A stretch of 64,000 nt of DNA, taken from assembly GCA_001179505.1 (NCBI GenBank), contig CDMY01000189.1, positions 62,001-126,000 of the forward strand. Reading direction: 5' to 3'. A program made the position numbers and the translations under genes. The DNA comes from Vitrella brassicaformis CCMP3155. Its lineage: Eukaryota; Protista; Chromerida. This document shows, in pieces, positions 1,104-39,966 of the stretch. Below the pieces are notes generated by a model that had not been told where the DNA came from, did no database searches, and worked only from the letters and a program-made list of their open reading frames with translations. Positions within the stretch are counted from its first letter, which is position 1; the number at the start of each line of letters is the position of its first letter.

Positions 1104-4100
1104 TCATCGCGTCCACACGCAGAACTCGTGGCCGCTGCACGCCACCTTCCAGTCTGCAATCGTCAGTCAAAGTACACACAAACAACAGGCAGACAGGCAG
1201 GATTGTGCACATGATGAATTGCTCGACTTGAGTGTGTGTGTGGTGGTGGCTGCTTTGCTTACTGCCCCCATCAGGTCCCCAGTGGTTGGTGCCGATCTTG
1301 ATGGCCACGTTGCCGCCGCCATGGCCGCAGTGGTAGTCACTGCAGCGAGTGCACACCCACCAGTGGCCCATCCAGCACACACCCACACATGAAGCCGCCC
1401 GCCTGTGTGCTGTGTGCTGGGTGGCTTACGGGCTGACGTATGCCGCGTAGAGTCCGCCGTGTGACGCCGCCACGTGCACGCCGCTGCGGCAGTGGATGCC
1501 CTTGTCCTTCCGGATGTTGCACAACTCCTGTCGTCCGTCGCACCGCAGAGGACACACACACACACATATGCGGTGCGTGAGGTGGTGTGTTCTGTCTGAG
1601 TATTCTTTACTTACGATGATTTTGCCCTGGACGTGTGAGCCTCTGTCGGACCAGTCGGACCAGAAGACCGACGGCGTGCCGGGGTGCGTCAGGATGAAGG
1701 CATACGCACGAGTCACCTGCACACACACAGATGCACACAGAGAGAGAGAGAGGGGAGACCTTCATCTGTCTGTCTGCCTGTCCATGTGCGTCTGTCTGGT
1801 GGGGTGGGGGGGGGCGGTGGGTCACGTCACCTGTTCGTTGTTGCCGAATGGTCCGCCGACAACGTCCAGATGGCACGTGTCGTGGTTCTCGATGAAGGTC
1901 ACCGAACGCACCGGATCCTGCCCACACACACACACACAGCGAGAAGGTCCATCCATCCATCCATCTCTGTGTGTTGTGACACACACACCAGTCCCATGAT
2001 GCCGTTGAGTCGTCCGCCCGGTGCGATGTCGCTGAAGTTGTTCTCCTGGATGGCCGTCCGCAGGAAGTAATACATCGGGAAGTCAAACACCGCAACCATC
2101 CCTGCAGACACCACACACAGACAGACACCACACACAGACAGACAGACATGCGCACACACACACGCACATCGCTACCTAACCTTGTGTGGCGTGGATGTAG
2201 TTCTGCAGCACACGCTGGTCGCCGTGCCAGTACTCGGCCACGGTGAACGGGTTGCCCACCGACTTGATGTAGTCAATCTGGTGATCCATCGATCCATGAG
2301 TGAGTGAACCGAACCATTCACACGCACTGTCCTGTGTGTCTGTCCGTCTGTCTGTCTGTCTGTCTGAATGCCCCCCCGCCCGTCCGCATAAGTCACCTGG
2401 AACTTGGGCGCGTATCCGAGGACGAAGTCGAGCCGCAGCGTGGCGAAGCCCACCTCCTTGGTCAGCCAGTTGAGCCATTGCTGATCGACCAATCGGTTCA
2501 AGACACAGACGCAGCCAGCCAGAAAGCCATCCATCCATCGATCCATCGACGTGATGATTGTGTGTGGTTGTGTGTGATTGTGTGTTCGTTGCTGCGGCCG
2601 GCCCACCTTGACGTCTCTCTGCACTTGGGGGTTGGTGTGATCGATGTCGGGCGCATACTCGATGGTCTCACCTGCTCGCACGGCACACACACACACACAT
2701 CCATCCATCCATCGATGGATGCCATGTGGTGTGGTGTGGTGTGTGTTGATGTTGGTGGTGGACGGCTACACACCAGTGGACGGTGCGCCCTTGCCGGGCA
2801 TCTTGGGGTCGTTGGAGCTGCCAGCAGCACATCACACCCCGTTGATCGATCGCTGCCTGTGTCTGTCTGTGTGAAGCGATGCGGTCCCTCACCAGATGGC
2901 CCACGATCCCCAGTCCGGCTGCTCGAACTCGGTGAAGTTGCCCGACGACCCCTTGCGCACTGCGCAACGATGGTTGACCACCTGCACAGCAAACCAAGAC
3001 ACACGCAATCAATCAATGCAATTCAGTGCTCCCTCCCTCCCTGTATGTGAGCATCCGTGTTTATGTGTGTGTTGTGTGCTGTGCTCACCACATCGCACAT
3101 GGGCGAGATGCCGTTCTCCCTAAACATGCCGAGGAGCGTCTTGAGCTCGTCGGCCGACCCGTACTTGCTGTTGAGGTTGTACCAGCCCTGTGGCAGATAA
3201 CCGTTGGCATCAACCGACTGAGCCGGCGGGGGAAGCCACACCTAAACCACCACCAAACCACAAACCACACACACACGCGTGGACACACACACACACGCGT
3301 GTGTGGGGGGGGGCGGGGGGNNNNNNNNNNNNNNNNNNNNNNNNNNNNNNNNNNNNNNNNNNNNNNNNNNNNNNNNNNNNNNNNNNNNNNNNNNNNNNNN
3401 NNNNNNNNNNNNNNNNNNNNNNNNNNNNNNNNNNNNNNNNNNNNNNNNNNNNNNNNNNNNNNNNNNNNNNNNNNNNNNNNNNNNNNNNNNNNNNNNNNNN
3501 NNNNNNNNNNNNNNNNNNNNNNNNNNNNNNNNNNNNNNNNNNNNNNNNNNNNNNNNNNNNNNNNNNNNNNNNNNNNNNNNNNNNNNNNNNNNNNNNNNNN
3601 NNNNNNNNNNNNNNNNNNNNGGGGGGGGGGGTTGGGGATTCTGGGAGGGAGGGCGAGAGGAGAGGGGTGTACAGTACCATGGTGAATGCGGATTTGGTGA
3701 TGAGGTCCATCTTGTCAATGATGACCTTGTACCATCCGTCGCGGTTGTGCGGGCTGTTCCAGTTGAAGCCCTGGAAGACTATGTGCGGCTTCTTCTCGCC
3801 CAATCGCACCACCTGCAGCATGTCAACCGCCTTCACCACCACAGGCTCTGCACCCACACAGACACACACCCGACACGCCCTCGACATAACATTCACACCA
3901 CACCCATTCCCTTCCTGCCTCTCTGCCGCTTACCGCAGGCAATGCCCTCTGTGGGCAGGTCGGGTTTGGCCCTCTTGGGGGAGCCCTCGCCGTTTTCAAT
4001 CTGCTCGCCGCTGCCAGCTACACCGTCCTTGCGCCGAGTCGACTCAGGCTCGCCACCTGCACACACACACACACACACATCCATCCAGCTCTGAACTTTT

Positions 4101-6689
4101 CGTTGTGCGGGGGTGGGAGAGAGGGGGGGGCTACCTAGTGCGGCATCTCCCACAGCCAGGCTGGGAGGGTCGGCCGGCCGCTCGTGCAGCGCCGTGATCT
4201 GGTAGCTGTAGGTCTTGTCCTTGACGACCTTGTCGTCCTGGAACATCTCCCGCTGGTCGGGGGATGGCGGCTCGATCTTCTTGCTCCCCTCCTGCCCCAC
4301 CGTCACGGTCACGCCACACACGCCCACGACCACGCCGTCCCTCCAGATGCGGTAGGCCGCGATGCGCTTGCCGCCGTGGTCAGCTGGGGAGCGCCACGAT
4401 AGCTTGACGCTGACATGGTGGCCAGACACACACAGAGAGAGATGGGTATAGGTGTCGGTGGGGGTGGGGGCTGTCGGGTGCCTGCAGTGCTGTGCAGCCG
4501 CGTACAATTTTGAAGAGTGCTGGTCGACCTTGAGGTCTTGTGGGGCGGAGGGCTTGCCTGGCTGGCCGGTCTTGACCTGTTTGGGGCAGACACAGACAGA
4601 CACAGACAGACACAGACAGACACAGACAGACAGACAGACAGACAGAAGGACAAGCCATGCCGTGTGAATGGCATGGTCGGACGTGTGTGGACAGGCCAGG
4701 CGGCTCGCCTACCTTGAGAGGGTCTCCGGCTCTGCTCTCGGCCCCCTGGATGTTGACGGCCGTGACGGTATAGGTGTAGGTGTGCATCCCCAGCACGTGG
4801 CGGTCGGTGTACTCGATCTCGTCCTCCTCAGCTGCACACACACACACACACCCATCCATCCATCCATCCGAACCGAAGACGAAGACGCGCCTGCGTGCAT
4901 GTACCTACCGGTTTGGTAGACCATTTCGCCGTCTCTGTAGACTCTGTAGCAGCCCACCACCTCGGCCCCAAACAGGGGGGGCGCCCACACCAGCTTCACA
5001 AACGAACCTCCTACCTAGCAACAGACACACAGCACAGGCACACAGCGAACCGCACAGACAGGCAGATCGAATCGGTTACACTCACACAAGACCGGACCGA
5101 CGGGCAGGCGGAAGCACATGCCATGGCATGGCATGGTAGGTGTTCTGGAGTGGTGTGGTGTGTGGTGTGGTGTGTGTGTGCGTGTGTGTGTACCTCCTTC
5201 TCGGCGAGCAGTGCAGGGCATCCTGGTGGGTCCATGATCTGCTCGATGCGGCCGGCCTGCAGCTTGAACAAACCCGGGTGGGGGATAGAGTAGTTGCGGT
5301 CTGACCGACAGACACGCACACACACAGACATCCGACATCCACACGTCCACAGGGGAGGAGTGCTTTGGTTGCATCCCCCTCCCCCCCCTCTCTCTGTGTG
5401 TGTGTGTGTGTTGTGTTAGGTACTTCCTGGCGCCTTGTCCCATTGGTTGCTGCCGGAGTTGGGCACAAATTCGATCTCCTGCACACCACAAACCACCAGA
5501 CAACACACCACACCACACACAAACGTATCAGCGTGTCGAATTGTATGTGCGTTGTGGATGGCGATGGTTCGACAGACCGACAGACCGTCATGCGGGGCGG
5601 GGCGACGTACCTTAGCGTCTCGTATGCAGAGGTACCAGACCTCTGGGCCGTTGAAGTCGTTGCGTGTGCTCTTCTCGAAGGGGAGCCCCGGCACCTCGGT
5701 CCACTTGCCGTTGTGGTCCTTGTAATGCAAATACGGCTGATCGGCGCGCACACGTGGGAGGGAGAGGGGGGGGCATGTGTGTGTGTGTGCGTGTGTGCGT
5801 GTAGAGGGGAGGGGCGTGTGTCGTGTGGTGTGTGGTGTGTACCTGTTTCCACCCACTAAAGTAGACGAGCTCAATGCCCGGCCCGATGACCAAATCTTCC
5901 TCCTGCAGGACACACACACACACACACAGAGGGACGGACGAAAAGATGAGGGCCGGCCGGGGAGGAGGTCAAGGGCTGAGTGAGTGCACATCCAGCAAGC
6001 CATCGCATTCACACGCATCTCTCTCTCTCACAGCAGCCAGTTGCATCTTGCATCTCTTAGAAGAAACCGTGGCTGGCCTATTCTGTCTACTCTGCCTGGC
6101 ATCCCTTCGTCAAAAAATCATCGCCCGTGTCAGTGGCGTCCTTGATTCGTGCAGCCGGCCGATCGCACTCACCCACACAGAAATGTCATCCCGATGCCTC
6201 CCCGTTGACCAACCATCATCAGACACACCAACCACAACCTCGTGGTGGTGGTGGTGCCTTTGGTGTCTTCTAGAACCACCCTGTCTAGTCACTCCTCCTC
6301 TGCCCTCCGGTCTCCTCGACCGGAAGGGCAGCGACAGCGACCACAGCCACCCCACGGCACGCACAAGGCCATCACCACACCTACTTACGTCCTCTTTGGG
6401 GAACAGAAGCGACGCCGAGTTCTTCCGGATGATCGACGGCTTGCTGCTCGTGCGCAGCAGCGACGCACTCGACTGACGCACCAGAGACGCCTTCGACTCT
6501 GTGGGCAGGGAGGGAGGGAAGCAGACACACACGAACACACACACACACACACGAGCGAGTGAACGAGACCCCGGTGTGTGTGCGGCTGACTGTCTGACCT
6601 GTGCGTCTGGGTGGCTCCTTGTAGGCGCCATGAGCGACACTGCCGCGGCGCTGCTCGGGCTGCTGGCCAATCACGCCGGAGGTCGCCAT
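1104..6689 (-). CDS. Multi-exon alpha-amylase (GH13, plant AMY-like catalytic domain) with an N-terminal CBM25/26-like starch-binding module and fibronectin type III domains
   Basis: About 20 exons. GH13 regions I-IV are intact: DVVVNH (2984-3095), LRLDFVLGY, AEYW, FIENHD. The C-terminus reads DWKVACSGHEFCVWTR* with TGA at 1104-1106. FN3-like exons: KLVWAPP..YRVYRDG..YTYTVTAVN and KLSWRSP..YRIWRDG..YSYQITA. CBM-like exons: YFSGW..YLHYKDHNGKWTEVPG..WD..NY. The start MATSGVIG at 6689 is inferred from splice-phase compatibility. Confidence 0.9.
3321..3620. other. Assembly gap (300 N) inside an amylase intron
   Basis: N run flanked by poly-G. Confidence 0.99.
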
Positions 6690-6946: not shown

Positions 6947-7105
6947 AAACCGACTCGGGATTTCGGGCAACGCCCGAAACGGCATGCGAGCTTATGCGAT
7001 TCCGTTTACTCTGCGAAACTCTGATTGCTGGAGAGCGACGATCGAAGCGCAGCGGGCATCTGGCGGCAGTGCGTCCAACACACACAGAGACACAGACACG
7101 GCAAG

Positions 7106-8551
7106 ATGAAGCTGCTGGTCGGTTCAGTGCTCGTCTCCCTCTGCCTGTCCACCCATGCCTTCGTGCTGCCGAGGCCGCAGGGCGCACTGCGAGCATCATC
7201 CCCTTCACGAGCAGAGCCCTTGAGGATGTCCGCAGACCAGCAGGAGGGCGACAACCAGCTCAGTCGGCTCATCGGCGGCATGCTGGGCCTCCTGGGCGGC
7301 GCTGCTCTTTTGGTCGGCCCTGTGCCCGACGCTGAGGCCATCAGCAAAGACTACGTCAAGTCGCTCACCTACGAGCAGGTCAAGGGAACCGGTAAGGTGA
7401 AGATGAGCAATGATCTGCATACGGAAGATGAGATGAGAGATCATCAGCGTGTTGATGGGGTCTGTGTGTGTATGCGTGTGTGCAGGTCTTGCGAATCGGT
7501 GTACGGCTGCTGAGGGCACCGGTTCCATCTCGATTTCGAGCGGCGGCCCATATGAGATGGTCGACTTCTGCATGGAGCCCAAGGAGTTCACCGTCCTTGA
7601 ACAACGCACACAAAAGAGGACAGGTCGGCACGTGGCCGGACACCCACGCGCCGTCTGGGTGGGCACCCAGATGATTGGTCGGTGTGTCGCTGTGTCCTTG
7701 GTGTGTGCTCACTTCCTCACTCAGGCAAGGTTGACAAGATCGGTCTGCCCACCAAGCTGACCACCCGGCAGACATACACCCTCGACTACATGTCGGGACC
7801 CATTGAGGTCAAGGACGGTACGAACCACCCACAGGCAGACAAACAGACAGAGAAACACACTCCATTGATTCGTCTCTCTCCCCCTGCCCCTGCCCTCTTC
7901 CTTCCCCCAGGCAAGATCACCTGGCAGGAGACCGACGGCATTGACTTCGCCCCCACGACCGTGCAGGTCGGTGCGGCCGAGCGTGTGCCCTTCCTCTTCA
8001 CGGCCAAGGACATGAAGGTCTCGGCCGACAAGAACGGCGCCACCATCTCACCGGGCCTCGGCCTGGGCGGCGAGTTCCGCGTGCCGGGTTACCGCACAGG
8101 TCTGTTCCTGGACCCCAAGGGCCGGGGCGGCACCACTGGCTATGACATGGCTGTGGCGCTCCCGGGGCTGCAGAGCGGCGAGGAGGGCGATGAGGAGCTT
8201 TTCAAGGAAAATAACAAGGTGCGTGGGGGTCAGTGGGGATGGCGCTGTGGATGGATGAATGGATGGATGGATGGCGTGTCTGGTTCGGTGTGGTGCAGCT
8301 TTATCAGTCGACCACGGGCAACATCGAGATGGAGATCCAGAACGTCAACCCACAAACCGGTGAGTGAGTCAGTTGGTGGGGACACTCTGTGATCGTCCGT
8401 GTGATTGCATGTGTCGCATGGATGATCAGGTGAGGTGTCGGGTGTCTTCGTGAGCCAACAGAAGTCGGACACCGACCTGGGCGCCAAGGAGCCCAAGGAC
8501 ATCCTCATCAAGGGCGCTTTCTACGGACGCATCCAGGCAAAGTCATCATAG
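7106..8551 (+). CDS. psbO: Photosystem II oxygen-evolving enhancer protein 1 (PsbO), nucleus-encoded, with signal peptide, transit peptide and lumen-targeting peptide
   Basis: Exons give [67 protein letters not shown] and [19 protein letters not shown]. The N-terminus is [19 protein letters not shown], with a lumen peptide ending AEA. TAG at 8549-8551. Confidence 0.97.
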
Positions 8552-9028
8552 ACAGACACACCAACACACCGTCCCCACCATCCCACTGGTTGGCTGGCTA
8601 CATGTGTGTGTCGGACGGTTTGCTCGCCCGTTTGTCTGCGAAGTGAAGTGTTAGCCTGGCCCTCCACCCCTCGATGGTCTGGCCTGCAGATGCGCTGTCC
8701 GCAGATTTTTGCGACCGGCTGCTGTGTGGTTCGTTCGTTCATGTGGCTGCATGCGTGTGCGTGTGCGTGCGGGGGGTGGCGTGCTGTTTGCGGGGAGTGG
8801 GTGGATGGGTACATGCCTGCCTGCCATGCCGATGTGGTGGCCACACAACAAAGGAGACGTCTGGGTGGCTGGTTTTATCTTGTGTGTTGAGCTCAATTGA
8901 CAATCGTGTGTGTGTAGCATAAACTGAACCGCGATTGACTCCCCTCAACCGCTCATCATCCTGGCCAACCTTTCCAACGGCCGGGCCCGTACACAGGGGA
9001 CGACCAAACCTCTCCAGGTCAATGCGGA

Positions 9029-27656: not shown

Positions 27657-29685
27657 ATGGCAGCCGCAGCCACAGCCACAGCCACAGCCGCCTCTAAGAT
27701 ACCATGGACAGATCTGCAGGTGCCTCCGCCGGAGCTGCAGCCGGAGTTCTGCCTCGTGTCGGGGCAGTGCTTCTCATTCAAGCCGTGCGAGGCTGAGGCT
27801 GGTGCAGTTGAGGCGCCATCTGATGGTGCTGGTGATGGTGTTAGTGACAGCAAGGAGTGGGTGGGCGTGATTGGTAGGGGAGTCTACCACATCAGACAGA
27901 CCGAGCAGACGACTCTGTTCAGGTGAGAACGAACGAACACAGACAGACAGACAGTGAGTGCAATGAATGCATTCATTGGTGCAGTCAGTGCTATCCCTGT
28001 GTGTCTTGTCTGGTCCCCCCAGGTGTCTGCACCACAGTCGGTATTCCAGCGACGGCAGCGAGTGTGTGGCGGAGGTGCGGGAGTTCTTCAGGCTCCACAC
28101 GGAGATGGCGCCGCTGTACAGGAGGTCAGCCGGCACAGCACAGCAACACACAAACACAAGGAGAAGAAGAAGCGCATCATGCATCTGCCTGCCGGTGGGT
28201 GTTCTGTTCTGTGCTTTTCTGTTCTGCAGGTGGGAGGGCGCTGACGCGCGGATGCGGCAGATTGTTCCGGCCCTCAGAGGCGCCAGGGTCATCCAACAGG
28301 TGAACGAAAGGACGAAAGAATGGATAGATGGATGGGCGGATGTCCCGAACTCACTCTCCCTCCCTGCCTCCCTCCCTGTGCTGTCCATTCCATCGGTCGG
28401 TCCCACAGGATGCGACAGAGTGTCTGTTCACGTTCATCTGTTCGTCCAACAACAACATCAGCCGCATCACTCTCATGATCGACCGACTCAAGCGGCACTA
28501 CGGCGACTTAATCGCCACCATCACCAGCCCCACGCCCACACTCACCGGCGCCGCGCTGCAGGAACACCAAGACAGCATCAGCCGAGACGGTGCAGTGCGC
28601 TCGTTGCAACCATGTGCTGGCTGCAGGCGCATCTTGTGTCTGGTTGTGCTGTGGGTGTGCCTGTAAATGGCAGGGAGTGGTGGGGGACTGCGGAGCTCAT
28701 CTGACGAGAGGCGAGCCGAGGAGGAGGGTGGGGGCGGTGAGCATGCGGGCTCGGGCTACAGCTGGTACTCCTTCCCGACTATCGACCGCCTCGCCGCCGC
28801 GTCGGAACAAGGCCTCAGAAGCATTGGTATAGATCGACGAACGACGAACGATCTGCAGAGAGAGATGGCTGCATTGCTATGGTTGGTGTGTGTGTGTGTG
28901 TGTGTGTGTAGGGTTGGGGTATCGCGCCAAATCGGTGGTTGAGACGGCCAAGGCGCTGAAGGAGCTGGGGGGCGAGGCCTTCCTGCAGAAACTGAAATCC
29001 CCGACCATGACGCGGCAGGAAGTGCAGAAGGAACTGCTGCAGTTCAGGTGCCCCCCACAACACATCCATCCATCCATCCATCAATCCCATGTGTGTGTGG
29101 TTCGTGTGGGCAGGGGTGTCGGCCGGAAGGTGGCCGACTGCGTCGGTCTGTTCTCGCTTGACCGGTTCGACGCCATCCCCGTCGACACACACGTGTGGCG
29201 CATCGCCTGCAGGGACTTGGACCGCTCTCTGCAGTCGGCCAAGTCCCTCACGCCGGCCGTCTACGACCGGGTGGGCGACCTCTTTCGCGACAGGTAGGTA
29301 GGAGGGACGCCGAATAGGATGTGTGTGCGCCATGGATGGATGGATGGATGCCATAAGGTATGGCAGCCGCGCCGGCTGGGCGCACTCACTGCTCTTCACC
29401 GCAGAGCTGCCCGCATTCAGGGCCCGCCTGGTACGTCTGTCTTTGTGTGTTGAGCCCCCCCCATTTTTATTCCCCTCTCGTCTGCCCACACCCACTCTCT
29501 CCCTCTCTCTCTGTCAGCCTGCGTCGCTGCAGCAGGAAATGTCGGAGTTTGCTGTCAGTGAGAAAGAGGCGAAGAAGACCGAGCGGGCGGCGCGCAAGAG
29601 GCGGCGGACCGGTGCTGAGGGGGAGGGAGAGGGAGAGGAAGAGGGAGAGGGAGAGGGAGATGGAGGGGGAGACGCTGAGGAGTGA
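27657..29685 (+). CDS. OGG1: 8-oxoguanine DNA glycosylase
   Basis: CLVSGQCF, ECLFTFICSSNNNISRI, FPT, LGYRAK, HhH-GPD motif GVGRKVADCVGLFSL..IPVDTHVWRIA. Confidence 0.95.
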
Positions 29686-30341
29686 GTGACCTGTGGCTGC
29701 CTGTGGTGGCTGTCGAAACGGCTGTGGGCACACACACGCAACCAGGGTGAGGTGAGGAGGGGAGGGGGAGGGGGGAGGGGGAGGGAGGGATCGGGAGTAT
29801 GATGAGAGCACTTCACAGACCTGTGCCGGAGGCATAGCCAGTGGGGACAACACACATACACAAGAACATCTAAGCCTGACCGACCCGACCACACACACAT
29901 TACACGCCGCATCGGTTTCCGCTGTCCGGCGGTCGCGATAATCTCTCTCTCTCTGTGTGTGTAGGTGTGTAGGTGATGGGAAGGAGGAGCCCAGCCGTTG
30001 AGACGATGGATGCCTGTCTGTCTGTGTATGTGTGCCAGTCAGTAGACCGATGGCGGGATGCCTATAGGCACGCGGCGCGTTTGCCGTTTCACGGATTAAT
30101 TCACACACACATGCATGCATCGTGAGCATGGAGTGACGAGTCAGTCAGTGTCTGAGACAGACAAGACAGACAGCAACGAATAGCATTCCAGTCTGCACAC
30201 GAGAGAGACGCACAGCGAGCCATAGCTAACGTGAAGGAAGAAGAAATGCACAACTACACACCACACCACACCACGGCCGCCCCATCCTTATACACAATTA
30301 CACACACACACATCCATCCATCCATCCTTCCATCCACCGCA

Positions 30342-33300
30342 TTATACACCCCCCGGCACAGCAACAGTGGCCAGGGACTCCTGCGATTCGCCCACCTTGA
30401 CCTGCCCCACACTCCCACTCCCCTCGTGGCCATTCGACCGCACATCGCCCCCCACACCCCCTGGCACCACCTGCTGTGTGCCGTTGGTGGTGGTGTGAGA
30501 GTGTGTGTGTGTGTGGGCGGTGTCGTCCTTCTCCTTCTGCACGTCGACAAGGGCCTTGTGCCTCCTGAGAATGTCCTTGATGTCGATTCTCTCGAGCTGG
30601 TGGGGGTGCAGCGGCTGGCTGCACATGGGGCACTGCCCCTCGTTGCCTGCCGCCTCAACCAGAGCGGAATACTGCACACACACGACACACACGTGTGTGC
30701 AGGGTGGAGGGGAGGGGAGATTTGTGTTGGTTGCCCGTCCTGTCTTGTCACCCACCCTTGCTGGAAAGAGGCAGTGGGGGCACTGTGTGGCATCCCCCGC
30801 CACCAGGTGCTTCCCAGACGCTATGCAGAACGGCGAGATGTTCTGATGGATGACATGACACACACAGAAAGGACACACACAGGGGAAGGAGACAATCCAA
30901 TCCACCAAGTGCAATCCATGTGAACACACGGACTTCCGCGTCTGTGATCGATCTCTCCCTCTCTCTCTCTCTCTGTGTGTGCGCCTGTGACGGGCCACCA
31001 CGCACCAGGCAGTGGGGGCACTCCAGCTGGGCCTCGGGCAGCGGCGCCCCACACGTCGGGCACGGCGCGTTGTCGGGCTCCCTCTCCTCCTTGACAGGCT
31101 TGCGCACAATGCTCTCGATCTTCTTCTTGTACTGGTCAGACACATGGGCCCTGGCAGGCCGATCAACACACCACACATCAGACCAAAAAACAGACACAGA
31201 CACAGAGAGACATCTATCTCTCTGTGTGTGGTGTGGTGTGCCTGGAGGGGGAAGCGGTGGGTGGAGGGTGCCTGGGCTTGCCTGTATTCTGGCTTCATCA
31301 GGATGCAGGCGTATTGGTGTGCGGACACCTTGAGGCCGGCGCGCTGGCACTCGACCACTGCGGACGTCAGGATGGGCACCACGTGCTGCTGAAACCTGCC
31401 AGGCAGACAGGCAACCACACACGACACACGGAGGGATGTAGGGATGGAGGGAGGGCGTGTTGGTGTGTTGGTGTGTGGAGGGAAGGGGTGGCCTGCCTGT
31501 GGATGCTTCTTGCGACTCTGAGGAGCATCAGCGCCGCGCCGTAGTGATCCCCGAGCTTCACCAGGCGCTTCACTGACCACCCACCGACACACTCCACCGA
31601 TGTGTCCATCCATCCATCCATCCATCCACATGTGCAGACTCACTCCTGCGCACCTACCCTACCGAGTATATAAGAGTGCAGCAGAGTCAGGTCCGACCAA
31701 AGCGACTGCGGGATGCGCAGACCCGCAGCCTCCAAATCCTGGGTGTGGTGGAATGGAGGCCAGCACACACACACACACAGACGGCATTCACACACAGGGG
31801 GGCCGGGTGTGAGGGGGAGGGGAGGGGAGGGGGGCAGGCAGCTTACCTTGCAGGTCTTGAAAAGGAGCGAATGCGCCACTTGGTACTTGCCGAGGTCCTG
31901 CTCGTTGCGGGCGATGAAGACGGCCGTGCGCGCGGCGCCCTCGTGGTTGCCTAGGGCTAGCTGCAGCCTACACAATCACACACACACATCCCACCCCACA
32001 CACATTGGCGCGGCACAGAAAGTGTTAAAAGGATCGTTCTCCTGCCCCTCTCTCTGTGTCTCTCTCTGTGTGTGAGTACTTTACTTGTAAAGGTAGCTGG
32101 GGTCCTTTGGGACGTTGTCGGTCTCCCCCACCAGGTAGCTCGTGAGGATCCGCGTCAGCAGGTCGTCCCGCGCACGGCCCACAACCGCTATGGCGTTGTC
32201 CAGCTCGGACTCGCCAGCCTGTTGTTCCATTGACACACACACACACACACACACGGTGTCGTGTTGCATTCGGGCGGTGTCGCAACCACACCCACCCACC
32301 CATCCATCCATCCACCCACACACGCACCCTGAGGTAAAGGTTGAGAGCCTGTTTGAAGTGTCCGGCCGTCATGTAGTGCTGCGCCGCCTTGCCCAAGAGA
32401 TGCCGGGTCTCGTAATGCTGCAAAACCATGTCAATCACAACACACACACACGCACACACAAACGCACACCGTCCGGGGGCGTACTGTGGTCACACACACA
32501 CCCGCCCCCCACCACCACCTACCTTTGCGATCCTGAGGTGGATGTCGGAAGTGCCGCCCTCGCCCAGGGCCTTGGCGAAGGCGTCCATCTCGTCGCGGCT
32601 CTCGGCCACCGCAAAGGCCTCCTGAGAGACAGACCACAGACACACACACACAGACAGAGAGAGACACAACACACAGCAGGTGGTGTGGTGTGGTGGTTGC
32701 AGGGAGACCTACCTCCATCTTGCCCGCGAAAAGGAGGAATTCGATGGCACCTGACACGTTGCCCTTGGACCTACCCCCGGCACACAGACAGACAGACAGA
32801 CAGACAGACATACAGACAGCACACAGAGAGGGATGCTCACACCTCACTTGCAGTACTCGGCCACCAGCTCTGCGCCACCGATGGAGTGCGACTTGCGCAC
32901 TATGTCGAACGCCTTGGCCGGGTCATTCAGCTGCTGCAGCTGCACACCACACCGACACACACCAAGAGAGAGAGAGGGAGAGAGAAAGAGAGAGAGACGG
33001 ACGGCACCATCCATCCATCCATCTCAAATGCATTTGTGTGTATGGGTGATTTGTGTCCAAGAGAGCGTACGAAGATCCTGACGACGGCCTCCCAGTCCTG
33101 CGCGGCTTCGTAGGAGGTGGCGGCCTCCATGAAGGCGCCTCTGGACTCCTTGGCTTTGGCGTACTGAGCGTGCAGCTTGGGCGTGCCGATCTTGTGCATC
33201 AGCGGGCCCGCACTGTCGAAGTCCAGATCCTGGCGACAGAACAGACACACACATTGCCAGACACAGAGAGAGAGAGAGTGGGTGGGTGCGTGTGCACCTG

Positions 33301-36300
33301 ACTGACCTGTATGTAAAGCGCCGCGGCCTTCTCAAAGAGCCCCGCCAGCTTGCACAGCTCCGCCGCCTCGCCCCGCTGGTTGACCCCCTCCAGCAGGGCC
33401 GCACACTCGCGCACCACGCCCATGGCCGCCTGACGCACCCCTGCAGGCCTCGAAGGGTCGTGCGCCGTCCTGCTGATCTCAGAGGCGATGGCCATGCCTC
33501 TGCTGGTGTCGCCCACGCGGAGGCAGGAGCGGGCGAGCCCGGCGCTGGCCTGCAGGTTATGGTGCTCGAGCTGGGGGTGCTTGTGGATGTCGTCTGGTGA
33601 GAGGCCGTGGATGTGGGCCTGCTCGTAGTGGGAGAGGGCCTGCTCGAACTCGCCTTTCTGCTCCATCTGGGCCGCGCAGCGGAGGTACACCTCTGGCAAC
33701 CGGTGAGGCGCCATCGACTGCTTGACACACACACACACACACACACACACATGAACGAATCGACCCTTACTTCCTCTCTCTCTGTGTGGCCGGGGGAGAG
33801 AGAGGACCTTTGCCAGTTTGAGGGCCTGGTCCCACTGCTGCAGGTCCCAGTGCAGGTCGAGCGCACACTCGGGGCAAGACGACGCCATGAACAATTCCTG
33901 CGCCTCGCGGAACCTCTCCAAGTGAACTGACCAACGAACGCACCCCCCCGACACACACACATACACACACGTGGATGGATGGATGGATGGATGGGCTGGT
34001 GCGTGCGCGGCGCACCTGCGATATGTGCCCTCAGCAGCAGTTTCTCCTCGACGGCCATGAGCTTCTGCACCCATGTGACCATGTCCGGCCGCCTGAGCTT
34101 CCTGTAGGCCTGCAGCGCCACCTCCAGCTCCATCAGCTCGAGGCACCGACGCGCCAGACGCGACAGCAGCGCCTCTACGGGGGGCATGTTGTCGGCTGAC
34201 GAGGCCTTCTCCAGTTCCATTAGGCACATCAAGGCCGCCTGAATGACACACAGACAGACAGACAGACAGACGCTGTCTGTTGGTGTGGGTGTGGGCGGCC
34301 CCCTCCCCCTCTCCCTGCCCCTCCCTGAGCTCTCAATTACCTGGGCCCTCCCAAGCGCCAGGTTCTGCCTGAACTCGCTAAACACCCTCTGAGCATCATC
34401 ACCACCACCACCACCAGCAGGAGACCCCTCAGGCATCAGCAGTGCATCGTGACATCCCTGCAGAGGGGCGGGAAGGGGCAGCGCGTCATGCGACTTGAGT
34501 CTCATGGCGGCCAGCTGTCCGTTTGGCTGTTGCGCGAGCAGGATGCCGTCGTAGAGGAGGATGGGCGCGTTGCCGGGGGGGAGGGCGGTGGTGCAGGGGT
34601 GTTGCGAGGGGTGCTGTGATGGGTCGTCGTCACTCCTTCCCAGGTCGATGCTGCACACCTGATGGATGGATGGATCCACACACACACACACACAGACACG
34701 AGTGGAGGGTTTCTAGAGTAGTGTGTGTTGGCCTCTCTCGCACACACACGCGCCTGAGTGATCTTGGGCCCGTCGATGGTGTTGTGGCTATAGAGGAAGG
34801 GCACCACCAGCTGCGCGTCGCACGCCGCGAACAGCGAGGGCATGGCCACGTCCCACAACACCGTGTGCGCCGTTCTGGGGTACTCGGGGATCCTAACACA
34901 CACAGAGAGAGTGAGGGGGCCGCCGCGCCTGTGTGTGTGGGGGGGTGGGGGGTGGGGGGTGGCTGTGTGGCCTACGGCAGACAGTTGTCGTCAATGGGAT
35001 TGTAGAGCGCGGCGCTGCCCTGCACGTCGATGAGGACCACTCGGGTGCCGGTGGGGCTGGGGAATATCTTCGAGACCCTCTGCGAATGCCGGTACTCATT
35101 CACCACCTCCCCACCCTGCTTGTTCGATCCACACACACACACACACACACACGGATGGATGGATGGATGGATGGCCGGCTCACGCACCGACCGTACCGTG
35201 ATGTCGTAGAACTGTATGGCGGTGCCGCCCTGGATGAAGATGAGAAAAGGCCCGGCCACCGTCGGCTCGCTGATGGGCTTGTCGGTGTCCTTCCGCGGCA
35301 GCACCTCCATCCCGCTGCCGTCGCCCCCGGCCGCATCAATGCGGTGCACTACCACCTGCCACACACACACACACACACACACACACATGGGGGTTCCTTC
35401 TGGGATGGATGGATGGATGGACGGATGGGCGGATGGGGTCCCAGCGCAGCTCACCTTTCCCTCGGTTGACACGACGGCGTGTGTGTCGGTCAGCGCGACT
35501 CTGTCAACGGAGCCCACGTACGTCTGCCGCCCCACCAACACGCCCTGACAACACCACACCACAGCCAGCCACACACCAATACTACTACTTACTGTCAACT
35601 CAACTCAACAACAGCAGCCAGCCATTTTGCACTGTGTGTCACTTCTTTACCCCATTTGCAGCAGCGTTGGACGGTGTCGGCGAGTGGCATCTATAGTACC
35701 AGACGGTGTTGTTCATGCCTGCGGCGCAGTGGCTCGGCCCCAAAGCCAGGAAACCCGGCTCGACCTCCGTCTGCAGCAGCGCCTTGGCGACGGCCTTGTC
35801 GCGAGAACCGTCCTCCAAACCGTCTGCAGCGAGTCATTGCAGTCAATGCAGTCAGTGCTGGCTGCATCAACTCTCTGTGTGAGTGAGTGGTCTGGAGGGT
35901 GGCTGGCTGACCGACGACGGTTATCTCGGTTAGGGAGGTGAGGAAGGCCACTTGAGTGCCGCTTACCGCCGACAGGGCGGTCAGCTTGGTCAGCAGGGAA
36001 TGCACGTAGCCTACACACACACCCCCCCCCCCACACACACACAAANNNNNNNNNNNNNNNNNNNNNNNNNNNNNNNNNNNNNNNNNNNNNNNNNNNNNNN
36101 NNNNNNNNNNNNNNNNNNNNNNNNNNNNNNNNNNNNNNNNNNNNNNNNNNNNNNNNNNNNNNNNNNNNNNNNNNNNNNNNNNNNNNNNNNNNNNNNNNNN
36201 NNNNNNNNNNNNNNNNNNNNNNNNNNNNNNNNNNNNNNNNNNNNNNNNNNNNNNNNNNNNNNNNNNNNNNNNNNNNNNNNNNNNNNNNNNNNNNNNNNNN

Positions 36301-37872
36301 NNNNNNNNNNNNNNNNNNNNNNNNNNNNNNNNNNNNNNNNNNNNNCCCCCCCCCCCACACACACACAAATGCGTCCGCACGACCCCCGGTGTCAATGCCG
36401 TGTGGCCGACTGGCCTGTGTTGGTTGCGATGGTGAGGAACTGCCCGTCTTTGCTCCACTGCAGGCCCGTCACCGCCACGGACGGCTGGGTCTGCTGCCCT
36501 TTGCCGCCGCCCTGCATGGCGGCCAGCTCCAGGCGCTCGTGTTTGATCTCACGCCAGTCCTTCATGCTCCACATCTTCACCACACCCTCACCTGGACACA
36601 CAGCGATATATGCGGCCACACCGACCACCGACCATTTCGGTGTGTGTGTGTGTGTGTACCTGCCGTGGCGGCTTTTTGCAGCGAGTGGTTGCAGCAGAGT
36701 TTGTCGAGGCTGTTGGCGCCTGTGTGTGCCCTGGTGGAGTGCAGCTCCTCCGACATTTCATTGGCGGCCTTGGTCGAAAGCACCACCACATAGCCGTGGC
36801 TGAACCCCACAAGCAGCATCGACTCACCGAACCACTCGTACCTACCAAACATACACACACACACACACGAGTGTGTGAGAGAGGGCAATGGCCTCACACC
36901 CACCGCCCGCCCCGCACCCCTTGATCGCGCCATATTTGGTCTGGAAGGCCAGCTCTAGCGGCCGCTCGACGTCGCTCAGGCTCAGCAGAAACAAAGACTG
37001 GCCAGACAGCACCAACGACACGCGCCCCTCCCCCGCCCCACCACCACCACCTCCATTGCCACCGAACTGCAGCGATGCCGGCTCGCCCTTAACGGACACC
37101 TGCTCGACATTCTGGCCCTCAGCCGTGCTGATGGTCACATACCGATCCTCCCCGGCCAGCGCCAGCAGGTCCGACGACTGGCTCCAGCACCCAGTAGTGA
37201 TGCGCTTCGAGTGCTTGCCCACGATGACCTCTTTCCGCCTGGTGCGCTTGTTGTAGAGCACCAGGGCGCCCTTGACCGTGCCCACGGCCAGCACCGGCGA
37301 GCGGCTCGCCCACCTGATGAAGGACACCTCCTTGCTGTGGGTCTCGAGCGTCTCCAGCCTGCCCCCGGCCGCCGTGTCAGACCACCAGAGGTGCACCACG
37401 GTGTCGCCTTTCTGCACGATGGCCAGCACCTCCCCCTCACAGTCCCAATCGAGCGCCAGCACGGGCGCGGTGCTGCTGGGGAGGGAGATCTCTCGAACTT
37501 GGGTGCCGTGGCGGTCGAATAGGAAGACTGCACGGCCGGAGGGGCCGGTGGTGGCGAGGAGGGGGCCAGAGGGCTGCCATGCGAAGAGGGCTGGGCCACT
37601 GCCGAGTAGCTGAGGGCCGACTGAAGGAAAGAAGGCACACACGCACACGCATACGAACCAATCCCGGACAGGCAGGGGAAAAATAGAAAGATGCACACCA
37701 TCCATACAGACATACTCATGGCTGCCTGCCTGCCTGTCTGAAATGAAATGAAATGTGTGGAGTCAGATACGTGTGTGTGTGGTCCATTCATTCCATTCAA
37801 TGCATGCCATCCATCCATGGATGGCTCCTGTCCTGCGTGTGTGGTGTGCTTACCGGAGAAGAGCTTCTTCAT
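30342..37872 (-). CDS. IFT144: Intraflagellar transport protein 144 (WD-repeat protein 19), IFT-A complex
   Basis: MKKLFS start, N-terminal WD40 exons (GKHSKRITTGCW, LALAGEDR, LELAFQTKYG), TPR-like region (KIGTPKLHAQYAKAKE, GAIEFLL) and C-terminal Cys clusters (CPTC, CPHC, CPMC). Confidence 0.93.
36046..36345. other. Assembly gap (300 N) in an IFT144 intron with duplicated flanks
   Basis: C-run plus ACACACACAAA on both sides. Confidence 0.9.
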
Positions 37873-38173: not shown

Positions 38174-38343
38174 TCTGATTGGCTGGCGCCAGTGACCGAG
38201 AGGCTTGGGGACTACGTTCGTTCGTCCCACCCAGAGATCTGCACACCCCACGGACCTGCCTGCAACAGCGGATCCGTCAGCTCTTCCTTGCACCCTTCCT
38301 CACCCCCCCACTGCCCGCGCGGCGTGGCTTCATTCAGTTCAGA

Positions 38344-39706
38344 ATGATGCTGGTTCTATTCAGCCTCAGCTCCGCTTTGTCCGGGGCAGCCGCATTCAAT
38401 GCGGTTCCCTCTGAGACCGCCGCCTTTCTGCAGATGCCCTCGCCCTTTATCGCACTGGTCAGTGAGTGAGAGGGGAGAAGGGAGAGGGAGAGCTGCAGTG
38501 GAGGGAGGGGATCTCTGCAGAGATCTGGACGTGCACGTGATGGGGGGAGCTTTGGTGCCTGTTGTGGTTGTGATCTTTCGTGTGGTTGTGTGTGTGTGTG
38601 CAGCGGCCAAGGCCGGCAGCGGGCAACTTGCACATGATGATTGAGACCGCCGACGAGCTCAACAAGCGCCTTGCCGCCATGAAGAGGGGCAGCCCTGCGG
38701 TAAGGTTGCGCTTGGCGTCCATCCGCTAATCCACGAGTGTGTGGCTGGTCCTTGATTGGTCAGAGGCCGAGCTACAGTGCCCCGAGCAGCGGCAGCAGCT
38801 ACAGCCCTCCCCCCTCCTCGGCCCGCACCAGCAGCGGCTACCCCGTGACGCCAGGCGTCGAGACGGCCGATGATTTGAAGATGCGGCTGGCGGCTCTGAA
38901 GAAGAACCAGCCTTCACGACCGGTAGGTCGGTCGAGTCAGTCGATTCACCACACACAGATCTGATCTGCTCCGACAGAGAGAGAGAAACCACCTCCCTCT
39001 CTGGGCGTGTGTGTGTGTCTCGTCTGTGGTGTGCAGAATAGCTACTCAGGGTACTCAGCGCCGTCGAGCTACTCGGCGCCTGCGTCATCCAGCGCGCCGA
39101 GCTACAGCGCGCCGTCCACAGCGGCCAGCAGCGGCCGGACCTCCTCGGGCTACCCCGTGACGCCCGGCATCGAGACCGCTGACGACCTCAAGATGCGCCT
39201 CGCCGCACTCAAGAAGGGCCAGACTTCGGTAGGACACGGGCCCGCCCAACCATCCACTGGTATGTTGTTCCTTTCCTTCTTCTTTGATTGGTCAGAGGCC
39301 GAGCTACTCTGCCCCGAGCAGCAGCAGCAGCTACAGCGCCACCAGCTCCCCCGCCCGCACCAGCAGTGGGTACCCCGCCACGCCGGGCATCGAGAGGAAG
39401 GAGGACCTCGACGAGCGCATGAAGGCCATCCGAATGCGGCAACGAGTCAACCAAGTGGTATGCTCACCACCCACCCACCCACACACACACACATCACTTC
39501 CCACTGGGAGGGAGCCTGGTCTGTCTGTGGGTCTCTCTGTCTGTCAGGTGTCGGGCTCGCCAGCAACGGAGCCAACCAACTTGTTCCGTACCGCCCCCGG
39601 CGGCTCAGCGCCGCGGCCCAGCAGCGGGTACCCCGCGCAGCCTGGGATCGAGCATGCGGACGACTTGGCCAAGCGCCTGGCGGCTCTCAAGAGGAAGATC
39701 GGTTAG
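38344..39706 (+). CDS. Putatively plastid-targeted, intrinsically disordered repeat protein with five ETADDLxxRLAALK helices (candidate pyrenoid Rubisco linker)
   Basis: Six exons joined by phase-0 GT-AG introns: 38344-38457, 38604-38699, 38764-38922, 39037-39228, 39296-39457, 39548-39706. Presequence MMLVLFSLSSALSGAAA-F...LHM. Spacers rich in Ser, Pro, Ala and Tyr. Confidence 0.8.
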
Positions 39707-39966
39707 AAACAACGGTATGCACACGATCACCACGGCAGGCCGTGTGCGTGGATGGATGAGATGCCATGCGGTGGTATGCGATGGTGGTATGCTGTGGAGT
39801 GAGGGGAGTGAGTATGTGTGTGGGGGGCAGAGAGAGTATGTGTGTGTGTGGTGTGTGCGTGTCGTAAGTGTAGTGTGTGGTACGCCTGCCGGTACTCTGG
39901 CCTGTCCCTCATCTGTCTGTGTCTGTCTGTCTGTCTGTCTGCGGTGTGTGGTGATGTGATCTTCAG

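Follow-up and report, generated by a model that had tools for sequence, protein, structure and literature searches.

A stretch of 64,000 nucleotides from Vitrella brassicaformis CCMP3155 (contig CDMY01000189.1, positions 62,001 to 126,000 of the forward strand; hereafter the window) holds a six-exon gene whose predicted product shows, at the level of sequence, every mark of a pyrenoid linker. This is a genuine gene, which is transcribed, is under selection and is confined to the Vitrella lineage. We tentatively suggest that it encodes the first linker of a Form II Rubisco pyrenoid, a five-valent protein of an alveolate plastid. Such a linker might have evolved independently of EPYC1, CsLinker and PYCO1, and be present in pyrenoid-bearing Vitrella and not in Chromera. 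Although we put this reading at somewhat under an even chance, it is the best single explanation of the evidence below, and the protein is a good, unproven candidate.

The candidate gene occupies 38344-39706 on the forward strand, where six exons, all in phase 0 and with GT-AG borders, splice to an 882-nucleotide open reading frame of 293 residues. The conceptual product is identical to the V. brassicaformis CCMP3155 protein CEL93773.1 (UniProt A0A0G4EEG1), which derives from the same contig, and the gene's five coding joints recur exactly in contigs assembled from three RNA runs (X1, X2 and X8). The coordinates and spliced product proposed in a first-pass annotation of the window, made from its letters, are therefore correct. 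A non-coding or mis-modelled gene is ruled out by these joints, by the phase-0 exons and by a synonymous divergence between repeats far above the nonsynonymous. Reading the transcript sequence by eye, we saw no ATG upstream of 38344, and in the literature we found no publication that mentions CEL93773.1.

The protein is organised around five copies of a 15-residue pattern, [IV]Exx[DE][DE]LxxR[LM]xA[LMI][KR], at residues 51-65, 102-116, 168-182, 219-233 and 275-289, so that successive starts lie 51, 66, 51 and 56 residues apart. A relaxed version of the pattern matches these five sites and no others in a six-frame translation of the window. There is one repeat per exon; aligned repeat cores are 47-90% identical, and Arg1, Gly5, Glu13, Leu18, Arg21 and Ala24 are invariant in the 31-residue repeat unit. 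As the first-pass annotation had described, the motif sites correspond to five short helices, the last four of which (copies 2-5) each follow the peptide SSGYPxxPG. AlphaFold2, run without an alignment, modelled helices only at residues 54-65, 105-117, 171-182, 222-243 and 278-292, coinciding with the five motif copies, with mean predicted local distance difference test (pLDDT) values of ~73-87 over 10-residue blocks. As for the disorder prediction that the annotation had proposed, all spacers are unstructured in the model, and pLDDT falls below 50 in 164 of the 293 residues. The spacers are of the Ser/Ala/Pro/Tyr type, with SYSAPSS-type repeats. Over the whole protein Ser accounts for 18% of residues, Ala for 14%, Pro for 11% and Tyr for 4%, and 50% of residues are Ser, Ala, Pro or Gly. 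The isoelectric point (pI) is 10.0 and the net charge about +14. Hydrophobic helix residues are spaced i, i+4, i+7, and on our own reading of the helical wheel Leu7, Leu11 and Leu14 would line up in a single stripe with Arg10 and Lys15 on its flanks.

This architecture is the one sought by FLIPPer, the homology-free pipeline that found CsLinker, which looks for largely disordered proteins with repeated structured elements and stickers 20-120 residues apart. All three features are found in the candidate, as disorder, five helices and a spacing of 51-66 residues.

Comparison of the repeats points to constraint on the helix. Between helices 2 and 3, 10 of 11.2 synonymous sites differ (proportion of synonymous differences, pS, 0.90), against a nonsynonymous proportion (pN) of 0.05, the sole residue change being a conservative Val/Ile. 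The SSGYPVTPG peptides that precede these two helices are identical, yet are coded with different Ser codon families. High pS with low pN indicates that the duplication is old and that the peptide has been kept by purifying selection, and by this measure the helix peptide is under such selection. The spacers have a different history: the 3′ end of intron 2 and the first ~90 nucleotides of exon 3 are nearly identical in DNA to intron 4 and exon 5 (38700-38860 versus 39229-39390), unlike the helix-coding 3′ halves of exons 3 and 5, which are strongly diverged. This pattern suggests a more recent, partial duplication, or spacer-specific gene conversion, between the exon 3 and exon 5 regions.

The leader resembles that of a nuclear-encoded plastid protein. 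The N-terminus reads MMLVLFSLSSALSGAAA/F, so that Ala occupies positions -3 and -1 of the putative cleavage site and Phe position +1; the first 17 residues bear no charge and have a grand average of hydropathy (GRAVY) of 1.74. The site is followed by 32 residues that include a single acidic one, are rich in Ser, Thr, Ala, Pro and Arg, and end in RPRPAAGNLHM. The signal-like peptide ending A/F and the transit-like region ending LHM reported in the first-pass annotation are thus present, and its comparison with psbO is real: the psbO leader in the window (~7082, +) has the same layout, with …STHA/F, a stretch that closes with PLRM and finally a lumen-targeting domain. Chromerid plastid proteins have a conserved Phe just past the signal cleavage site, and Vitrella keeps to it less strictly than Chromera does (Füssy et al., 2019). 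In the ESM Atlas the language-model neighbours of residues 1-50 are nearly all nuclear-encoded plastid proteins, including CP12, phycoerythrin alpha, HHL1-like, PsbM, PsbW and PCP; these neighbours are a lead only, because their scores (0.58-0.71) lie below the reliability level of the tool. A mitochondrial presequence was ruled out, there being no basic residue before residue 39. Import into the plastid is on this evidence quite probable, and the stroma is the compartment that the product would most likely enter. The psbO gene itself lies at 7066-8943 (+) and has six exons, five of its introns being confirmed by RNA contigs; its leader is tripartite, the third part being the hydrophobic lumen-targeting domain, which ends AEA/I.

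The candidate is well expressed in X1, X2 and X8, at between about a tenth and a quarter of the psbO level, as gauged by assembled-contig word depth, a rough measure. Its depth was 80.7 in X1, 112.3 in X2 and 508.4 in X8, where psbO, the gene with the deepest coverage of those compared, reached 805.5, 445.8 and ~3,600-6,400 and the other neighbouring genes ~4-30, 5-21 and 11-150, respectively; across the three runs this amounts to ~10-25% of psbO and 3-40 times the other neighbours. Transcripts of both genes also occur in a sediment metatranscriptome from 2022 (X3), spliced and 95-99% identical to the candidate (38232-38673) and to psbO (7724-8581). There the two genes are covered to a similar depth, 3.6 for the candidate contig, which has exons 1 and 2 spliced, and 2.3-7.3 for the psbO pieces; against the window the candidate contig shows one synonymous coding change, and five substitutions and an indel in the 5′ untranslated region (UTR). 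A close relative of Vitrella is therefore transcriptionally active in that sediment.

Searches returned the candidate and almost nothing else. Pfam, searched with each exon and with the whole protein, gave no domain above noise, the best matches being PilJ (E=0.0016) and Met_synt_B12 (E=0.052), both under the curated cut-offs. A profile search of the PDB gave only insignificant amphipathic-helix matches, to apolipoproteins and designed coiled coils, with no linker, CsoS2 or ESCRT chain among them. When exon 4 and the full protein were used as queries in word-indexed searches of 5.8 billion clusters, the candidate itself was the only protein recovered, and an exhaustive profile search of 1.84 billion representatives recovered the candidate plus one bacterial protein, P0002. 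The presence or absence of a counterpart in relatives was among the checks proposed in the first-pass annotation, and that exhaustive search detected none in Chromera or dinoflagellates. Neighbours of the candidate in the ESM Atlas, by language model and by structure, were all below the reliability threshold and serve as leads only.

We rejected P0002 as a homologue and take its match for chance: its surroundings are rich in transposases and offer no Rubisco context, and the likeness of its helix to the Vitrella sticker is probably convergence. P0002 is a protein of 411 residues with a Hypoth_Ymh (PF09509) domain, encoded on an 83.6-kb contig of an ENA metagenome (ERZ28763718) amid transposase and integrase genes; ahead of the Hypoth_Ymh domain it carries nine tandem 18-residue repeats, ATASPLAELDKRFAAMQ[HR], which include ELDKRFAAMQ.

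The candidate has the design of known Rubisco linkers while sharing no sequence similarity with them. EPYC1 of Chlamydomonas reinhardtii is a basic disordered protein with five helical stickers and a repeat period of ~50-65 residues. It supplied the features on which FLIPPer was built, and the named architectural ones recur in the candidate; EPYC1 differs in that it binds the small subunit, which Form II lacks, and the two are of independent origin. CsLinker of Chlorella sorokiniana is plastid-targeted (via a chloroplast transit peptide), as the candidate probably is, and is like it largely disordered, with regularly spaced helices, six to the candidate's five (Barrett et al., 2024, PMC11570498). 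Arg/Lys salt bridges on a hydrophobic face hold its helix to the Rubisco large subunit, a chemistry that the candidate helix shares. Homologues of CsLinker and EPYC1 occur only in close relatives (PMC11570498), and the candidate is likewise lineage-restricted. It differs from CsLinker in that its host plastid is complex and of the red lineage, presumably reached by a bipartite leader, in that its presumed target is a Form II enzyme without small subunits, and in its less uniform repeats and Tyr/Ser-rich spacers.

PYCO1 of Phaeodactylum tricornutum is a repeat linker of a complex plastid of the red lineage, with stickers that can self-associate (Oh et al., 2023, PMC10288592); by analogy, the coiled-coil-like helices and Tyr-rich spacers of the candidate could do the same. 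PYCO1 is, however, specific to Form ID and does not demix with Form II (PMC10288592). The alpha-carboxysome scaffold CsoS2 is similar in architecture, being disordered and basic with repeated short Rubisco-binding helices, but it comes from bacteria, has Form IA Rubisco and shell proteins as its partners and shows no detectable homology to the candidate; when the mature candidate is compared by language model, CsoS2_M clusters are among its neighbours at a score of 0.45, below the reliability threshold and a lead only.

The cell biology of Vitrella offers a setting for such a protein. Electron micrographs in the literature reveal that V. brassicaformis has a pyrenoid, in tight association with starch, in agreement with the first-pass annotation, and the Rubisco of Vitrella is a nuclear-encoded, single-subunit Form II enzyme (Vbra_7578). 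Form II Rubisco of dinoflagellates is located in the pyrenoid; in Chromera no pyrenoid has been demonstrated. The annotation knew of no described linker for a Form II pyrenoid, and we found none in the literature either, for dinoflagellates (including coral symbionts) or for chromerids; two reviews from 2026 name none.

From these features we infer plastid import, Rubisco as the partner and condensation, which together would give the following mechanism. The protein would enter the plastid stroma by way of a signal peptide for the endoplasmic reticulum, cleaved at AAA/F, and then a short transit peptide, leaving a mature product of ~244 residues that is basic and disordered and bears five amphipathic helices. 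Each helix would present a stripe of Leu, Leu and Leu (or Met or Ile) beside the invariant Arg and a Lys or Arg, and would dock on a patch at the surface of the Form II large-subunit dimer, which has no small subunits, by hydrophobic contact and salt bridges of the kind that join the CsLinker helix to RbcL. With its five valencies, one linker could then bridge several Rubisco dimers, each with at least two sites, so that the pyrenoid matrix condenses; by simple network reasoning, five-fold valency in the linker and two symmetric sites on the dimer should be enough for a condensate. The Tyr/Ser/Pro spacers would set the reach of the linker and may add weak self-association.

The first-pass suggestion that this protein may condense Form II Rubisco is partly supported: its plastid-type leader, disorder, helix number and spacing, pI, selection, lineage restriction and transcript level all agree with a linker. 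Several observations weigh on the other side. The same architecture filter passed 13 proteins in Chlorella, one of which was the linker (PMC11570498). The helix is of a generic amphipathic type, its best PDB likenesses being apolipoproteins and designed coiled coils, and all five copies fit a relaxed MIT-binding pattern. The repeats, at 47-90% identity and with a divergent helix 4, are less uniform than those of EPYC1 or CsLinker. The signal-like peptide has no charged n-region and its core is rich in Ser, and contig depth measures expression poorly.

Among the alternatives, the one that survives best is a plastid-targeted disordered scaffold or regulator with a partner other than Rubisco, such as a Calvin-cycle enzyme complex (in the manner of CP12), a thylakoid or envelope protein or the nucleoid, or else a self-pairing coiled-coil condensate or gel; we consider this rather unlikely. 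It draws on the same targeting and architecture evidence as a Rubisco linker does, and most FLIPPer-type proteins are not linkers, as the single linker among 13 in Chlorella illustrates. The antiparallel topology of the designed coiled coils among the best PDB likenesses, together with the apolipoprotein helices and the i, i+4, i+7 hydrophobics, would suit helices that pair with one another, and CP12 clusters occur among the language-model neighbours (at low scores, a lead only). However, given five-fold valency, even spacing, basic charge and a high transcript level in an alga that bears a pyrenoid, the simplest partner to propose is the protein most abundant in the stroma, and we know of no plastid regulator of this design.

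Secretion in place of plastid import is improbable. The product would then be a Ser/Pro/Tyr-rich structural or adhesive part of the thick wall of the Vitrella cell or sporangium, or belong to another endomembrane compartment. Such a protein would likewise begin with a signal-like peptide, and the Ser/Ala/Pro/Tyr-rich composition and SYSAPSS-type repeats are reminiscent of extensin- or resilin-like extracellular proteins; Phe at +1 is not fully diagnostic of plastid targeting, because it is less strictly conserved in the plastid proteins of Vitrella. Against secretion, the Phe falls exactly at +1 of an AxA-type site and is followed by a psbO-like transit stretch poor in acidic residues, the language-model neighbours of the leader are (weakly) plastid proteins, and the candidate contains no Cys and, by Pfam, no known wall domain.

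Least probable, and by our estimate very much so, is a cytosolic multivalent ligand with a non-working signal peptide, which would present either five MIM1-like motifs to the MIT domains of Vps4 and its relatives or a tandem of WH2-like actin binders. The first-pass annotation had itself raised the likeness to ESCRT-III MIM1, and the caveat holds. In CHMP1B, IST1 and other ESCRT-III proteins the MIM1 helix has the core L-x-x-R-L-x-x-L-[KR] after acidic residues, as in the candidate: the relaxed core LxxR-phi-xx-phi is found in 5/5 helices and LxxRLxxL[KR] in 3/5, the CHMP1B peptide ELSQRLARLR is close to the candidate's DDLKMRLAALK, and a proline-rich segment lies ahead of each helix. The strict ELM consensus [DE]xxLxxRLxxL[KR], by contrast, is matched by none of the five helices, because position -3 is Ala in four and Lys in one and so lacks the acidic residue of MIM1, and because the final Leu gives way to Met or Ile in helices 1 and 4. 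MIM1-bearing PDB chains are not among the best profile matches, and the candidate has five copies in a disordered protein, where ESCRT-III proteins have one at the C-terminus of a Snf7 fold; Pfam finds neither a Snf7/ESCRT-III domain nor WH2. The automatic UniRef label 'WH2 domain-containing' speaks for an actin binder, but we rejected it as a domain assignment because it has no Pfam support (no PF02205 match at E<=10 with the exons or E<=1 with the protein). Finally, the first ATG of the transcript yields the signal-like N-terminus, which implies another compartment and would keep the protein from cytosolic MIT domains and actin.

The layout of the candidate linker gene is given in Table 1. 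Beyond 39714 the RNA contigs of X1, X2 and X8 read on as AAGAGAAGGAGCG…, matching the window from 39966; because of this jump we place a sixth intron in the 3′ UTR. That intron holds long (TG)n and (CTGT)n tracts, and (GT)n or (CA)n runs are also present in several other introns of the gene. The upstream neighbour, at ~28344-37872 on the reverse strand, encodes a 1492-residue WD40/TPR protein of the intraflagellar transport (IFT) type (WDR19/IFT122-like); further neighbours are OGG1-like, PDCD5-like (dsDNA_bind) and NOC3p genes, none of them functionally linked to the candidate.

Table 1. Transcribed features of the candidate linker gene, in window positions.
Feature	Position	Strand	Content	Basis
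5′ UTR	38196..38343	+		RNA contig X1 begins at 38196
Exon 1	38344..38457	+	Signal-like peptide (residues 1-17) ending AAA/F, plus most of the transit-like region
Exon 2	38604..38699	+	End of the transit-like region (…RPRPAAGNLHM), then helix 1 (38640-38684, IETADELNKRLAAMK)	RNA, model
Exon 3	38764..38922	+	Ser/Pro/Tyr spacer, SSGYPVTPG, helix 2 (38857-38901)
Exon 4	39037..39228	+	Longest SYS/AP spacer, SSGYPVTPG, helix 3 (39169-39213)
Exon 5	39296..39457	+	Spacer whose DNA nearly matches the exon 3 spacer, SSGYPATPG, then helix 4, longer and divergent (39389-39433 onwards)
Exon 6, coding part	39548..39706	+	Spacer, SSGYPAQPG, helix 5 (39647-39691), stop codon 39704-39706; exon reaches 39714
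Sixth intron, in 3′ UTR	39715..39965	+	Begins 8 nt past the stop codon

Of the Rubiscos of oxygenic phototrophs, Form II is the one with the poorest CO2/O2 specificity (2026 review), and its packaging is therefore central to how Form II algae photosynthesise in air. With a mature candidate of 244 residues and a defined 15-residue sticker, the question of a Form II linker becomes directly testable with recombinant proteins. If the candidate is indeed such a linker, it would reveal how phase separation can be brought about for a dimeric Rubisco that lacks small subunits, and would add a minimal pair of linker and Rubisco to the synthetic-pyrenoid toolbox.
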